Shown: positions 3,185 to 13,498, counted from the first letter of the stretch. The stretch: 64,000 bases of DNA from Adineta vaga (GCA_021613535.1 CP075492.1:6386001-6450000), one strand, 5' to 3'. Numbers and translations are program-made. The notes: generated by a model from the sequence alone, not told the origin.

Positions 3185-3807
3185 AATAAAACTCAGCCGG
3201 CCCGGAGTACAAGTAAATAAATAGAAAACAAATAAGTTTGCTGATTCATTTGTTTCGAACCAATAAACGTGAGATCCATACTGGAAATAGAGGTCGCTAT
3301 AGTGCTATAATATCAAACTATTTCTATAGGACTTATTATACCCATGAATGATGATGATAATTATATGTACATAGTCCTTCTCGCATTAAACGTAACAACC
3401 TTTCCGCAATCTTGACAGAACTATATCAAATATAATATGTGTATTTTTTCTAATCATTTTGACTAATATTACTCATGTGTTATAAAAAAACAGTCACATT
3501 TCTTTTTCTTTTGCAATATAATATGGATGACAGAACACCAAGTGTATATTGTCGTTTTGCTATATTATGTATATATTTCTCTCTTACTTTCTTTCATTCT
3601 TTCTTTTCGGTCTAAATTGTGTTTATCTTCAGCGTGACATGACAACGGGTAATATTTTTTCCCAATAATACTTTTTTTTCTTGGACTACTGTCAACGCGT
3701 CATCAGTCAAAAGTTAATTCCCTCTCGTCTTGATATCATTTCTACTTTTACTATGGACGATATATATATATTTCATCGTTTCTTACAATTGTTTTAGATC
3801 AGCTATC

Positions 3808-4611
3808 ATGCATACAATCTTTTTTCTCATCGTCGGCATTTCTTACATTGCTTTCAATGGTAAATTAAGCAATCGGTTACTTCCTATTTAAATAAATATA
3901 TATGTTTATTGATTTCAGATGCAGCAAGTCTTTCTTTAAATGAACAAAAGATCACATTACGTGGACGAGTTGTATTTCCTGATGGTCCACGCACTCCAAT
4001 TGAATCTGATGGAGTTCTAACTGTTGAACTGCAAGATACATCATTAATGGATGTATCTGCACGTGTTATCGCTCGAGGCACAGGCAAAGCTATTCGATTT
4101 CCCATGGCTTTTGCTGTAAAATATTTTTCAAAAGAAATTTCTCCTGGAAACACCTATTCATTACGTGTTACTATCAGAAATAAGAAAAATGAATTATTAT
4201 ATATCAATGATGTTCATATTGCTGTTACTCCAATTGGCACAGAACGAACAAAATTCATCGATGTACCTGTTATACTTGTTAAAAGTAAAATGAAGATCGA
4301 TTTTTCTGCTTTTTCTATCTGTAACTTTTCAAATATTTAGAATCAACACCAAAATTAAATAGACAGCAATGGCCAGAATTGGTTGGCAAAACTGGACAAG
4401 AAGCTGTTCAAACAATCAAACAGGAGACAGGTAGGGTTTTTTCTAAGTATTTTAAATTCATATGAAACTTTGCGCGAATGATTCAATAGGATTTAAAAAT
4501 GTTATGACAATCAACGAAGGCTCAGTGATTACAATGGATTTTTGTTCGAATCGCGTTCGTGTTTTCGTCAATAAGAAGGGAATTGTCAGCCGAACTCCTA
4601 CCATTGCCTAA
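3808..4611 (+). CDS. Secreted YbaY/YscW-like domain + potato inhibitor I (I13) fusion protein, paralogue A (P1 Met)
   Basis: Exons about 3808-3859, 3919-4284, 4341-4430, 4490-4611. Signal MHTIFFLIVGISYIAFN; YbaY-type LRGRVVFP...LTVELQDTSLMDVSARVIA...FPMAFAVKY...YSLRVTI; then QQWPELVGKTGQEAVQTIKQETG..VITM-DFCSNRVRVFVNKKGIVSRTPTIA*, the I13 WPELVG and RVR signature. Confidence 0.85.
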
Positions 4612-4853
4612 ACAATATTATTCGATAAAAACAGTCACATGAACTGAAAAATACACATTTTCTTTGGAACATATCATTACAATAACCCTCTCCATTTTTC
4701 ACAAACCTATCTAACTGCTTGTTGCTCTAATATTTTTTTATAAATAATGCATAAAACCCTCTTGAGAGTGAGAAAACTTTATTCAAATGAAGCGTATATT
4801 ACAATGAAATGGCGATAAAAAAGAGTTTATGATGTCTCTTCCATGATACACAT

Positions 4854-5242
4854 TTAACTGCAGTATGGTTGATCATTTCCCCATGATCGACATGATGATG
4901 GACATTTACCAATTGTGATCCATTGATTACCACCAACACATTGAACAATGCTTGCACCGTTCACAAAATAACATTCATACTTGCCTCGTGGAACACATCG
5001 ACCTGTTGTTGTTGTACAATCACATTGACGACGATTACGAATGGGTTCTATTAGATCAGGCGATAACATGTCTTCACACAATGATTCAGAAATGCGACTT
5101 AAAACTTACCATCGAGAGTAGCAGGATCGATGATGTTCAGTTCATTCAATTGTTGTTCTGCTGTTTCGATTGGACTAGCCGAGGCATGAAAAACCAATGC
5201 CAAGGCAACCAAAGCGAAGATAAATAATGATAAGGTTTGCAT
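4854..5242 (-). CDS. Secreted 8-Cys prepropeptide, copy 1 (108 aa, 2 exons)
   Basis: MQTLSLFIFALVALALVFHASA signal, acidic pro-region, 62-nt intron, EPIRNRR cleavage site, mature QCDCTTTTGRCVPRGKYECYFVNGASIVQCVGGNQWITIGKCPSSCRSWGNDQPYCS*. Confidence 0.9.
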
Positions 5243-5653: not shown

Positions 5654-5773
5654 CTCGAGTATCATTTCACACACTCATCATCAGTAACAACTCAAATCAA
5701 CATAAAAAACCAAGGTAAAGTATATTCCACTCTGCGATCTAATCTGTAGAAATCCATGTATCATTGTAGAAAC

Positions 5774-6162
5774 ATGCAAATCTCATCATTATTCATCTTC
5801 GCTTTCGTTGCCTTGGCATTGGTTTTCCAAGCCTCGGCTAGTCCAATCGAAACAGCAGAGCAAGGATTGAATGAACTGAACATCATCGATCCTGCTACTC
5901 TCGATGGTAAGTTTTAAGTCGCATTTCTGAATCATTGTGTGAAGACATGTTATCGCCTGATCTAATAGAACCCATTCGTAATCGTCGTCAATGTGATTGT
6001 ACAACAACAACAGGTCGATGTGTTCCACGAGGCAAGTATGAATGTTATTTTGTGAACGGTGCAAGCATTGTTCAATGTGTTGGTGGTAATCAATGGATCA
6101 CAATTGGTAAATGTCCATCATCATGTCGATCATGGGGAAATGATCAACCATACTGCAGTTAA
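5774..6162 (+). CDS. Secreted 8-Cys prepropeptide, copy 2 (108 aa; exons 5774-5906, 5969-6162)
   Basis: MQISSLFIFAFVALALVFQASA-SPIETAEQGLNELNIIDPATLDEPIRNRR-QCDC...PYCS*; canonical GT-AG intron. Confidence 0.9.
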
Positions 6163-7542: not shown

Positions 7543-7931
7543 TTAACTACAGTATGGTTGATCATTTCCCCATGATCGACATGACGATGGACAGTTACCA
7601 ATTGTGATCCATTGATTACCACCAACACATTGAACAATGCTTGCACCGTTCACAAAATAACATTCATACTTGCCTCGTGGAACACATCGACCTGTTGTTG
7701 TTGTACAATCACATTGACGACGATTACGAATCGGTTCTATTAGATCGGGCGATAACACGTCTTCACACAATGATTCAGAAATGCGACTTAAAACTTACCA
7801 TCGAGAGTAGCAGGATCGATGATGTTCAGTTCATTCAATTGTTGTTCTGCTGTTTCGATTGGACTAGCCGAGGCATGAAAAACCAATGCCAAGGCAACCA
7901 AAGCGAAGATGAATAATGATGAGGTTTGCAT
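7543..7931 (-). CDS. Secreted 8-Cys prepropeptide, copy 3 (108 aa, K->N variant)
   Basis: MQTSSLFIFALVALALVFHASA...EPIRNRR-QCDC...ITIGNCPSSC...PYCS*; same 389-bp gene span as the other two copies. Confidence 0.9.
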
Positions 7932-8805
7932 GTTTCTACAATGATACATGGGTTTCTACAGATTAGATCGCAGAGTGGAATATATTTTACCTTGGTTTTT
8001 TATGTTGATTTGAGTTGTTACTGATGATGAGTGTGTGAAATGATACTCGAGTATTTATAGGAGCAGTTGACAACGTCGAGTGAGATCAACGCAATAGAAA
8101 AAAGTCATTCTGTGGTGAAAGTGAGGTATCAGTTCTTTCCCAATGCGCAAATGCGTTTGTGTAGAAGTAGTAGGCGAATGGGTAAACCCACACTCTCATA
8201 GAGACATTCATCCACATATGTACAGGTGAATGCATGGGTTGAAAGGTAATTCTGCTTTGTTCTATATATAGTTACAGATAACCGATTACTTTTTATTACC
8301 TTTTGCAATAGAGAATATTAAAAATAGACAGGAATACGATATTTATAGGAAAGTTGAGAAGACTCAAACCTAAAGTTTTATTTATATTGAACCATTCGCG
8401 TATTTCTTCTAAACTTGGTATGTGTAACTTTCTACGTTGAGGAAAGTTAATTGGTATGATAACTCCTGGAAGTTCTTTTTTGTATATTAATCAGAAGGGT
8501 AACTAATATTTCCAGTTCGTGAGTGAGATATGTATTGATTTGATGATGATTATATTGATTTTTATTCACTCTGCTAGATTATTGTGCGTTTTTTTTATAA
8601 AACCGATGTAGTTATAGAGGGCAAGTAGTTGATTGAGAGAAAAATTCTCGAATAAAAATGTACTACGTCTCACTAAACATAAACTTGAGTGTGTCTTCTT
8701 GAATTCACAGTGCCTGAGAAACAAAAAGTAGAAACCTAGCGAGTGTTAATTAACATTATGTAGATTCGAAAAAACTCCATATACATAATACACGTAATAT
8801 TTTTT

Positions 8806-9768
8806 TTATGTAAGAGAAGCAGGTACAATTAAATTCTTTCGATTCATCCAACTTTTTGCTTGTCGTTTAATTTTGTTTGTTACTTCTGGTAGGCAACCAA
8901 TGCATACATAAGGTAACAGAAGGGTTAAGAGCCAATAGACATAGAAAAGATAGACATTTTTCACATAAGCCAGTGTTGAGGACAGTCCAACGAGTAAATC
9001 AATTACTTGTATGAATGTGTAAGGTCCCATACAAATAAAATAAAGCGCTGAAATCGATAATAGTTGTAAAATCATTCGACGATGCTTACGCCATACATTA
9101 TCTCGATGTAGTATTGGTCTTTTTCGTTTAATCACACGAATAACAAGACAGAGAGAAAATAACGCACTGAACAATGCTGGAAGCCAACTATGAACAAAAA
9201 GATCGTAGAGTGAAATAATTGAATCTTCAGTAAAACATGGTTGACCACAGAGTGGTAAATCAAAATGAAAATGTTGCTTACATGAATGTATAAAGATAAC
9301 TATGATGTAGAATATTATCAAATAAATAACGATTAGAAATAATGGTAAATAATGAATTAAGAATCGACGTTTGCTAGTATTAATAAGATGACTATGAAAA
9401 ACAAGAATATGTCGCTCAAATGATGTCCATAACATCAATAGATTAGCTTGGCCATATAATAAATAGTCACACCATTGCCAAATAAGACAACTAGCTATTG
9501 TTTGTGCTCCAACAACACCAAGACGTAAATAATGTAAAATACGTGGTATTTCAATAAGATTTGTCAACAACGATACAATAAGAAGTGCTAAAATAGCGTG
9601 ATGATGTATCCCTAGACGAAGATGACGATTTGTAATAAGATAAAAAACAAATAAACAATTACAAATAAGGGAAGGTGGTTCGAGTACGAGGAAAACACAA
9701 AATTTACTGTATCGTGTAAAAGTTGTTTCTGATAATTTCGAATTCGAATTGTTAAGGAAAGAACTCAT
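8806..9768 (-). CDS. Orphan rhodopsin-like (class A) GPCR, intronless
   Basis: 320 aa with 7 hydrophobic segments, SFERH (DRY-equivalent), Cys at the TM3 start, LLPYVC in TM7. Confidence 0.85.
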   Translation of the reverse strand: MSSFLNNSNSKLSETTFTRYSKFCVFLVLEPPSLICNCLFVFYLITNRHLRLGIHHHAILALLIVSLLTNLIEIPRILHYLRLGVVGAQTIASCLIWQWCDYLLYGQANLLMLWTSFERHILVFHSHLINTSKRRFLIHYLPLFLIVIYLIIFYIIVIFIHSCKQHFHFDLPLCGQPCFTEDSIISLYDLFVHSWLPALFSALFSLCLVIRVIKRKRPILHRDNVWRKHRRMILQLLSISALYFICMGPYTFIQVIDLLVGLSSTLAYVKNVYLFYVYWLLTLLLPYVCIGCLPEVTNKIKRQAKSWMNRKNLIVPASLT

Positions 9769-10277: not shown

Positions 10278-10768
10278 ATGGCCCAATTACAAGTCACCAT
10301 TATCGAAGGAAGAAATTTGAAAAAGAAAGATTTTTTTAGTGAAAGTGATCCATTTGTTCAAATCTATCTGGATGATAAAAATCAAAAACAAAAAACCAAA
10401 GTAAAAAATAATACAAAAAATCCTCAATGGAATCAATCATTTGTTTTGTATGATATGAATTTCATCTAGTTTTTCTTATGATTAAATTCAATTGAATTTA
10501 TTTAGTAATCATCTCAAAGGACAAAATATCTTACATGTTGATGTTTATGATAAAGATACATTTATCGATGACAAAATTGGATCGATAGAAATTGATTTAC
10601 ATGAATTATATGAAAAACGTACTGATCTTTGTCATATATAAATGTATTTTAAGTTTTCTCCATTTTCTAGGTCAGATTGATGAATGGTATGATCTTCCAT
10701 CTCGATTTGGTAGATCATCTCACGGTGAAATTCATTTGATACTTGATTATCAACCACTCAAATTTTAA
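10278..10768 (+). CDS. Small single-C2-domain protein (3 exons, ~127 aa)
   Basis: LQVTIIEGRNLKKKDFFSESDPFV...TKNPQWNQSF / LHVDVYDKDTFIDDKIG / IDEWYDL...GEIHLILDY. Ca-binding Asp residues are present. Confidence 0.85.
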
Positions 10769-12162: not shown

Positions 12163-12363
12163 TTATTTCGATTGATTTCCTTGTTGTTGTTGTTGTTTTT
12201 GTTGCTGTTCAAGTTTCCTCTTTAGAGCATCTAATTGTTCAGATTCTTGTGCATGAAAAAAAGCATTTTCAGCAGCTCGACCTCGTTCACTGAACGCGCC
12301 ACCTCCTTGACCAATTGAACCAGCTTGCGCTCCCAAATGAATATTTTGATCATTAGAAGACAT
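12163..12363 (-). CDS. Mitochondrial ATPase inhibitor IF1-like protein (66 aa, no evident presequence)
   Basis: AGSIGQGGGAFSERGRAAENAFFHAQESEQLDALKRKL matches the IF1 core [38 protein letters not shown] at 12425-12433 (- strand). Confidence 0.8.
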   Translation of the reverse strand: MSSNDQNIHLGAQAGSIGQGGGAFSERGRAAENAFFHAQESEQLDALKRKLEQQQKQQQQQGNQSK

Positions 12364-12943
12364 GTTGATTTGAATTTTTAAATCTGAAAAAGAATTCACA
12401 GTTCGAATCATCTACTTTTCTTGCTTTTATATATCACAAGAATGACGTTGTTCTTATTCATATTTGTTGTTTTTTTCTCATGCAATATTCTTTTGTATTC
12501 GTCGAATATTCTACTCGTTGCGTTCTTCAATAGCACGTGAAGATGATGAATCATATATTATCCGTACTAAAATGGACGAATCTGATGTTCTATTCGGATA
12601 TTTATGATGGGCTGGACATTATTTTACATTCTTTTTATCTTCCATATATCAATAAATGTCGAATTAATACATAAGAGAAGAGTTTCTCAAAATCGTGTAA
12701 TAAACTAAAGTCGTGCTTTCCATTTTGACAATGCCCGATGATCATAGGAAACGTTGTTCAAATTCTTCAATTAATTAATGATACAAAAATGATTTCTACA
12801 TGTTTCATGAGAAGCCAGTTGCAATTGATTAAAGAAAACATGGAAATCATCATAGAGGCCGATTGAATTTTGTGATGGATGCAAATATTCGATCCTAACA
12901 TACACATTCGTTATCAACATATATAATTTAGTCGTTTATTAAA

Positions 12944-13498
12944 ATGGTAAAGATCGCACTTCAATTAAAAGCAAATTTAGAGAATGTGACAGATTTTCAT
13001 ATTGAATCTTTTGATGATTTTATTTGGTATTTGAAAATCGATTGCTCAAAATGTCATACACAATCGGATAAATATCATGATATAACTTTAAAAGAAGCAT
13101 CAAGTATAGCTGGAAGTCGTGGTGAAGCAAATTTTATTATGAAATGTAAATTTTGTTCTCAAGAAGGTAATATTAATATTGAACCTATTAAACCAGCTGT
13201 TAGTTATACAAGTGAAGATTCAGATAATCATAAGTTTAAAACTATTGTTATATTCGATTGTCGTGGTATTGAACCAATTGATTGGCAACCAGGTTAGAAA
13301 GAATTTTGTTTTTATCAATTTAAGGAATGTTTTCTTTTCTCTCTAGGGGATGGATGGACATGTCAAGGTGTAGAATCGAATACAAAATTCAAAGCAATCG
13401 ATCTATCAGAAAACAAAGAATGGATGGATTATGATGAAAAAACAAAAGAAGCTGTAACTATTAATGAATTGGAATTTAAATTTGTTAAAGTGAAATAA
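12944..13498 (+). CDS. CZIB: CXXC motif-containing zinc-binding protein (C1orf123/DUF866 family), 2 exons
   Basis: MVKIALQLKANLENVT, CSKC, GSRGEANFIMKCKFC, FDCRGIEPIDW, EWMDYDEK. Confidence 0.92.

Follow-up and report, generated by a model that had tools for sequence, protein, structure and literature searches.

The stretch of DNA analysed here (64,000 nucleotides of the bdelloid rotifer Adineta vaga, GCA_021613535.1 CP075492.1:6386001-6450000; hereafter the window) is an AT-rich part (27-36% GC) of the chromosome-scale contig C3, in which it occupies positions 6,386,001-6,450,000. At window positions 3808-4611, on the plus strand, lies a four-exon gene (gene 1), identical to the public record I4U23_012712 (P0001, 209 aa), whose product combines a signal peptide, an N-terminal head of the bacterial YscW/YbaY type and a potato inhibitor I (I13) protease inhibitor domain; a divergent paralogue (gene 2) is located at 11774-10975 on the minus strand. 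The initial annotation had described gene 1 as a chimeric YscW and I13 protein with introns, and this description was borne out, as Pfam matches above the cut-off were obtained on exons 2, 3 and 4 and all three introns are of the GT..AG type. Exon 1 (3808-3859) contains the start codon, the signal peptide MHTIFFLIVGISYIAFN with its hydrophobic h-region and no cysteine, and the first base of the D18 codon. After intron 1 (3860-3918, 59 nt, GTAAAT..TTTCAG) follows the 366-nt exon 2 (3919-4284), encoding the entire YscW/YbaY-like beta-sandwich (residues 18-140). Intron 2 (4285-4340, 56 nt, GTAAAA..ATTTAG) marks the domain boundary; exon 3 (4341-4430; P0001 residues 141-169) encodes the linker and the N-terminal third of I13 with the WPELVG motif and a helix; intron 3 (4431-4489, 59 nt, GTAGGG..CAATAG) falls within the I13 domain, and exon 4 (4490-4611) supplies its C-terminal two thirds with the reactive-site loop and the stop codon at 4609-4611. 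All these parts are on the plus strand, all three introns are in phase 1, and exon 2 is a symmetric phase 1-1 exon. The four in-frame exon translations correspond to residues 1-17, 19-139, 141-169 and 171-209 of P0001, the codons split by the introns being those of D18, K140 and G170. In a sequence search the exon 2 translation was 100% identical to P0001, which served as the reference for the spliced product of gene 1, while Pfam scans were run on each exon separately.

With cut-offs of 22.6 bits for YscW (PF09619) and 24.5 bits for potato_inhibit (PF00280), exon 2 scored 46.9 bits against the former (model positions 6-96 of 107; a profile search of the genome gave 46.4 bits at the same place), and exons 3 and 4 scored 29.7 and 46.9 bits against the latter (model positions 2-22 and 28-63 of 64, respectively). 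The I13 domain of gene 1 is complete and spread over separate exons, as had been claimed, and is interrupted by intron 3 near model position 26; it was also fair to remark that the track of open reading frames (ORFs) misses the I13 part, the domain being split by this intron. The precomputed Pfam annotation of P0001 likewise lists PF00280, and an NCBIfam scan of the gene 1 exons gave nothing useful. The sole cysteine of P0001 is C188, so that no lipobox cysteine stands behind the hydrophobic N-terminus, in agreement with the signal peptide originally described.

Contigs from public sequencing runs were aligned to positions 3600-4800; the RNA nature of those runs that yielded spliced contigs is only guessed. 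The 855-nt X1 contig spans 3796-4800 and precisely skips all three introns, joining the exons at GT..AG (3858/3859 to 3918/3919 at the first junction), and the 604-nt X5 contig, which comes from a separate study and bears another organism label, skips introns 2 and 3. An X6 contig has a loose end at 4284 that runs on into the first letters of exon 3, and the X12 contigs retain all three introns (intron 1 in contig 3, intron 2 in contig 8), as expected of genomic DNA. Since contigs that lack introns, obtained in two studies independent of each other, connect the exons exactly at GT..AG, both domains of gene 1 are on one transcript; the possibility, raised in the initial annotation, that the domains might not be joined in transcripts is contradicted by X1 and X5, both of which connect exon 2 with exon 3. 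The 3' untranslated region (UTR) takes up approximately 4612-4752 (the X5 contig ends at 4756, and an allelic X6 contig has a poly(A) run after ~4747). At the other end X1 starts at 3796, and within 3796-3807 lie a short 5' UTR and what is probably the acceptor for trans-splicing (AG at 3796-3797). Ahead of this AG, X1 has 9 extra letters (CTTACCAAG), which probably belong to a putative trans-spliced leader, as they resemble the presumed end of the bdelloid leader. The leader gene was not found in the genome by pattern searches with a putative leader 21-mer followed by GT (2 mismatches) or with the 9-mer followed by GTAAG. In bdelloids, a 23-nt leader is trans-spliced onto more than half of the mRNAs (PMC1925144).

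A fusion of this kind might be suspected to be an artefact of contamination, misassembly or merging of adjacent genes, the more so as exon 2 on its own goes by the name "lipoprotein YbaY" in metagenomes annotated with gene callers of the prokaryotic style. The probability of such an artefact is, however, negligible. The locus lies inside a 20-Mb chromosome-scale contig, has a GC content of 30% like its surroundings and contains three spliceosomal introns; the exon-joining contigs come from two studies, and the metagenome "lipoproteins" P0006 and P0043 are intron read-throughs. Besides, both-domain orthologues are present in at least seven named bdelloid species, and gene 2 keeps its neighbours (the IATP and CXXC genes described below) in another genome.

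The fusion is conserved across the bdelloid genera Adineta, Rotaria and Didymodactylos. Annotated proteins with both domains and 59-77% identity exist in Adineta ricciae, A. steineri, Rotaria socialis, R. sordida and another two Rotaria; more divergent ones occur in A. steineri and R. sordida as well as in Didymodactylos carnosus. When 1.84 billion representative sequences were searched with a profile built from nine full-length orthologues, 2469 matches were obtained (28 of them below 1e-30), the best 150 of which were listed. Domain profiles applied to the retrieved sequences identified about 40 proteins with both domains, all of them bdelloid or rotifer-like; I13 was absent from all retrieved proteins of the bacterial type (with a lipobox, Pro/Thr-rich linkers or tandem YscW repeats), and there was no I13 within 2.5 kb of any of 53 named bacterial YscW loci. 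As for the metagenome "YbaY lipoproteins" with 60-72% identity, they are the same gene as called by prokaryotic gene callers, P0006 and P0043 reading straight through the introns. A longer variant occurs in Rotaria sp. Silwood1, where P0045 and P0196-P0198 (432 aa) have two complete and one partial YscW heads followed by a single I13 with Thr at the predicted P1.

The initial annotation knew of no characterised protein of this architecture. Our literature search likewise found no paper on the YbaY/YscW domain or potato inhibitor I in rotifers, nor any published description of the architecture; it is not a one-off, though, but an old conserved bdelloid family with paralogues, whose members public databases already list, with both Pfam domains, as uncharacterised proteins. 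The gene 1 product is an I13 inhibitor whose N-terminal module, probably foreign, is without precedent and is part of a bdelloid head-plus-inhibitor family.

In an alignment of 40 domains from rotifers, fungi and bacteria, the head is 30-39% identical to bacterial proteins over the full length, and bacteria and rotifers alike have kept the motif L-Q-D-x-S-L-x-D-A-P, along with Y71 and N-D. The head profile matches one solved structure (PDB 5wec, E 1.2e-31). The AlphaFold2 (AF2) model of the head, with a predicted local distance difference test score (pLDDT) of 94.1, is closest to the same 5wec, an alternative pilotin of the T2SS (type II secretion system) of Vibrio cholerae (Z 15.8, root-mean-square deviation 2.3 over 110 residues, template modeling (TM) score 0.87), and then to ExsB, a pilotin of the T3SS (type III secretion system; 2yjl, Z 11.4 over 100 residues, TM 0.69); the fold matches after these two are generic beta-sandwiches with Z of 7.7 or less. 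The head is a true member of the YscW/YbaY family in sequence and fold, its pilotin-like fold being that of the predicted model. By function it is not a pilotin, as both defining marks of a pilotin, lipid anchor and secretin context, are missing from it: the locus is on an animal chromosome and its neighbours are non-secretin genes (the rotifer genome itself was not scanned for secretin).

The I13 part aligns with the solved inhibitors LUTI of flax (1dwm), BGIT of bitter gourd (1vbw), BWI-1 of buckwheat (3rdy) and CI-2 of barley, with E-values of 1e-11 to 1e-9. Met185 (codon 4534-4536, plus strand), the predicted P1 residue, is aligned to the P1 Lys of LUTI, and the loop T184-M185-D186, supported by R191 and R193, stands opposite T-K-D. 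T184, D186, R191 and R193 are invariant in nine orthologues, and P1 is Met or Leu across the orthologues of the gene 1 group. In the full-length AF2 model (9 sequences) there are a helix at 158-169 and three strands, but the I13 part is poor, with pLDDT of 41-74. We predict that the gene 1 product inhibits proteases of the chymotrypsin, elastase or subtilisin type.

Gene 2 has the same exon plan as gene 1, namely a signal-peptide exon, a 366-nt YscW exon and two I13 exons, predicted at 11774-11720, 11664-11299, 11243-11148 and 11096-10975 on the minus strand; its introns of 55, 55 and 51 nt are all GT..AG and in phase 1. Scanned exon by exon, it matches YscW with 30.7 bits and potato_inhibit with 25.9 and 33.7 bits, and its head is about 30% identical to that of gene 1. 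In the maximum likelihood (ML) tree gene 2 groups with P0059 and P0063 (97*), and in all three of these proteins the predicted P1 residue is Lys (codon 11052-11050, minus strand, in gene 2), from which gene 2 is predicted to target trypsin-like enzymes. P0063 is encoded on a 228-kb contig (ENA ERZ26165376) of a GC-richer (~48%) bdelloid-like genome, beside genes for IATP and a CXXC zinc-binding protein. The same two genes, for IATP, the mitochondrial ATPase inhibitor (12163-12411, minus strand), and for the CXXC zinc-binding protein (12944-13297, plus strand), follow gene 2 in the window, which is thus syntenic with the P0063 locus (L069). These shared neighbours indicate that P0063 is the positional orthologue of gene 2 and that the duplication is old. 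The same contig bears the orthologue of gene 1, P0017 (L001 4001-4665), approximately 110 kb from that of gene 2 (L069 6001-6678). P0017 has retained intron 3 and has lost, or never possessed, introns 1 and 2, which are thus lineage-variable. The symmetric phase 1-1 exon is in line with the proposal of the initial annotation that the head was domesticated with introns and shuffled onto an inhibitor. In L069 the gene 2 orthologue was called as a single ORF that reads through the short in-frame intron 3. Genes resembling those for PPR/DYW-deaminases were noticed near the L001 and L069 loci.

As to the A. vaga genome as a whole, it contains 16 YscW-like loci and about 14 I13 loci. At six of the 16 the YscW head precedes a serine-protease inhibitor (I13 in three cases, Kunitz in two and antistasin together with Kunitz in one), so the earlier picture of a head shuffled onto one inhibitor, while valid for the I13 fusion, proved too narrow, the head being joined to Kunitz and antistasin domains as well. 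The three loci with I13 are gene 1, gene 2 and a copy on contig C6 (P0012). At L003 and L004 a Kunitz domain stands directly behind the head (68.7 and 70.1 bits), and at L002, annotated as I4U23_028931 (P0206), the head is followed by antistasin and then Kunitz; both A. steineri and Rotaria sordida have orthologues of P0206. In the cDNA-like contigs P0156 and P0164 a single open frame runs from the signal peptide through YscW and antistasin to Kunitz, and P0203 and P0204 are further annotated or cDNA-like proteins with such combinations. At three other inhibitor loci, according to conceptual joins, the head is followed by a phase-1 in-frame GT..AG intron of 52-58 nt, as in gene 1. Among the loci of the other kind, L006 (1556-2056, minus strand) and L008 (1477-1842, plus strand) have no inhibitor domain within 1.5 kb, the head of L006 being preceded by a Gly/Tyr-rich low-complexity stretch GYRGYPYGSYYPTMGYGYQ. 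At L013 (548-2031, minus strand; C6:0.48 Mb) a YscW-like ORF has behind it, in the same orientation, an EGF ORF (35.6 bits) and a piece of chitin-binding peritrophin-A (21.4 bits, just under the cut-off).

Outside bdelloids, the named holders of the head, taken from the best 150 of the 2469 matches and from locus and cluster searches, are bacteria (Chloroflexota, Planctomycetota, Actinomycetota, Pseudomonadota and Acidobacteriota) and Mortierellaceae fungi. Named bacterial loci, including those of Chloroflexota, Gemmataceae and Acidimicrobiia, are 29-43% identical to the head; the bacterial locus search used the pattern DTS[LIQ][AM]D, which biases the taxa found, and the phyla listed are not a list of donors. 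There is no non-rotifer animal among the nameable matches in the best 150 of 2469, and of 14 control genomes searched with the YscW profile only E. coli gave a match. The Mortierellaceae proteins P0129, P0184 and P0202 (Gryganskiella, Linnemannia, Mortierella) have two tandem YscW-like domains, and these fungi are the only other named eukaryotes among the matches listed. In the ML tree of 76 head domains, 36 of the 37 bacterial rows form one starred group with all eukaryotic rows outside it; holding all 37 bacterial rows on one side fits better (p-value of the approximately unbiased test, p-AU, 0.886), and a single group of rotifer and rotifer-like heads is not rejected (p-AU 0.648), so far as the sequences go compatible with one origin of the rotifer head family.

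Because the distribution is broad in bacteria and very patchy in eukaryotes, transfer of the head from bacteria to bdelloids seems the likeliest explanation, and we hold it with good confidence. The horizontal acquisition assumed in the initial annotation thus stands as far as the overwhelmingly bacterial relatives of the head are concerned; in the tree there is no nesting, and for the direction and the donor it is the distribution alone that speaks. The alternative, that the YscW-like domain is an old eukaryotic one, vertically inherited and lost in most lineages, would agree with the position of all eukaryotic rows on one side of the tree, where all 37 bacterial rows can be held on the other (p-AU 0.89), with the identity to bacteria of just 30-43% and with the age and diversification of the family in bdelloids. 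We nevertheless regard it as unlikely, considering that the named eukaryotic holders are two distant groups, bdelloids and Mortierellaceae, both known for foreign genes or endobacteria, that many bacterial phyla hold the family, and that E. coli alone of the 14 control genomes was positive, while the best 150 of the 2469 matches included no animal apart from rotifers. As for the I13 half, it looks resident in the rotifer, since the position of intron 3 (model position ~26) is that at which most A. vaga I13 loci are interrupted, and since the GC-richer relative keeps intron 3 alone. That the fusion arrived from bacteria in one piece was rejected: none of the retrieved bacterial matches carries I13, and the I13 intron is common to the resident rotifer I13 genes.

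Taken together, gene 1 is likely to be a nuclear A. vaga gene for a secreted two-domain serine-protease inhibitor with an accessory head of likely bacterial origin. After removal of the signal peptide the C-terminal I13 domain would act as a canonical substrate-like (Laskowski) inhibitor, the exposed loop T184-M185/D186, braced by R191 and R193, docking in the active site of the protease. The head would be a non-catalytic accessory module, most likely for binding or scaffolding, and could anchor or present the inhibitor outside the cell; we read it in this way because it precedes Kunitz and antistasin inhibitors in bdelloids and MliC, an inhibitor of c-type lysozyme, in bacteria. In the initial annotation a role as a targeting or oligomerising module had been put forward tentatively. 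As to its history, the head was probably acquired once from bacteria by an early bdelloid ancestor, duplicated, and then joined to resident inhibitor exons at a phase-1 intron just past the domain.

The same combinations, with three unrelated families of serine-protease inhibitors in bdelloids and with the lysozyme inhibitor MliC in bacteria, would also suit a head that is itself a second inhibitory or enzyme-binding domain, acting on an exosite or on another class of hydrolases, in which case the proteins would be bifunctional and not anchored; the surface motif L-Q-D-x-S-L-x-D-A-P with Y71 and N-D, kept from bacteria to rotifers, could be understood in the same sense. To our knowledge, however, no member of the YscW/YbaY family is an inhibitor, the solved relatives are secretin pilotins and the lower fold matches generic beta-sandwiches, and many family members stand alone or with META or NlpE; we give this explanation a rather small chance. 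Compared with it, the anchoring or scaffolding head is preferred, and it can be extended to a broader, speculative proposal that we advance with considerable reserve: the YscW-like module might be a cross-kingdom "inhibitor-presenting" unit, combined with MliC in bacteria and with I13, Kunitz and antistasin in bdelloids, which anchors or orients its partner at a surface or binds an exosite, and which after one ancient transfer gave rise to a bdelloid family of defence inhibitors. If this were true, the uncharacterised YbaY family would for the first time have a lead to its function.

Several observations weigh against this picture of a secreted inhibitor with an acquired accessory head. The role of the head as an anchor or scaffold is pure inference. 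Given its poor model (pLDDT 41-74), the fold of the I13 part is deduced from the sequence. The runs that gave the spliced contigs are RNA by guess only. The eukaryotic heads are not nested inside the bacterial ones, the tree showing neither a direction of transfer nor a donor, and, with the best 150 of 2469 matches listed, there may be weaker relatives in other animals. No inhibitor domain was seen near ten of the 16 YscW loci of A. vaga, and at L009 (1520-1924, minus strand; C3:2.44 Mb) and L011 (1534-1974, minus strand; C5:4.20 Mb) a Met stands directly before the domain (MSGKATG...), seemingly with no signal peptide. The latter two are possibly cytosolic stand-alone heads and are grouped in the tree with the tandem-YscW protein P0124.

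Between genes 1 and 2, the window contains three near-identical, two-exon-looking copies of a gene for a secreted Cys-rich peptide, in inverted orientation (4854-5242, minus strand; 5756-6162, plus strand; 7543-7949, minus strand). In each copy an ORF for the signal peptide (MQ.SSLFIFA.VALALVF.ASASP...) is accompanied by a Cys-rich ORF of 75 aa, for which Pfam gave no match. The position of genes 1 and 2 on either side of these three copies suggests an extracellular defence setting. In the text of a paper on fungal attack (PMC11258130) there was no relevant inhibitor, and its supplements contained no PF09619, YscW, PF00280 or YbaY. Further along the window there are an ORF for a rhodopsin-type seven-transmembrane protein, similar to G protein-coupled receptors (8806-9768, minus strand; a weak match of 27.5 bits), and a C2-domain gene (10278-10768, plus strand).

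For the massive uptake of foreign genes by animals, bdelloids are the textbook example, and most of the cases described are whole enzymes. Here, a domain of the bacterial type forms an exon of its own in animal genes and has been joined to protease inhibitors of three unrelated families, which makes it a clear and testable example of probable domestication at the level of a domain and of recombination at the level of exons, and a route toward the function of the widespread bacterial YbaY family. The secreted inhibitor set may matter when the rotifer defends itself against proteases of fungi or bacteria; the predicted specificity differs between the two genes of the window (Met versus Lys at P1).

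In comparison with the single-domain I13 inhibitors CI-2, LUTI (1dwm), BGIT (1vbw) and leech eglin c, to which its I13 part is related with E-values of 1e-11 to 1e-5, the gene 1 product has the same WPELVG start, helix and loop position. The loop reads T-M/D in gene 1 and T-K/D in LUTI, and the R-V-R brace and the C-terminal G-x-V-x-x-P-x-I-G are shared with these inhibitors as well. While these inhibitors are free-standing proteins of 64-80 aa, the I13 domain of gene 1 is placed behind a signal peptide and a 120-aa beta-sandwich of the foreign type, and, in contrast to them, a phase-1 intron interrupts its coding sequence at model position ~26. Within A. vaga, P0206 and the YscW plus Kunitz loci L003 and L004 share with gene 1 the head, its N-terminal place, the phase-1 intron after it and secretion, but their warheads belong to unrelated disulfide-rich families (I2, I15), whereas the I13 of gene 1 is disulfide-free.

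With the YbaY/YscW family (YbaY of E. coli, 5wec of Vibrio, ExsB of Pseudomonas and YscW of Yersinia, 2yjl) the rotifer head has the sequence family and the fold in common; unlike the bacterial proteins, it has no lipobox and no cysteine, follows a eukaryotic signal peptide, is encoded by one spliced exon and is fused to a protease inhibitor. Modular partners of the YscW-like domain are known in bacteria too, in the lipoproteins YscW-MliC (a cluster of Acidobacteriota in the ESM Atlas), YscW-META and YscW-NlpE, where it is joined to an inhibitor or an envelope module; the META fusions were confirmed on P0078 and P0117. They differ from gene 1 in the partner domain and in being bacterial lipoproteins. 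Of these, YscW-MliC, a lead taken from cluster summaries only, is the nearest functional analogy to the rotifer head and its inhibitor.

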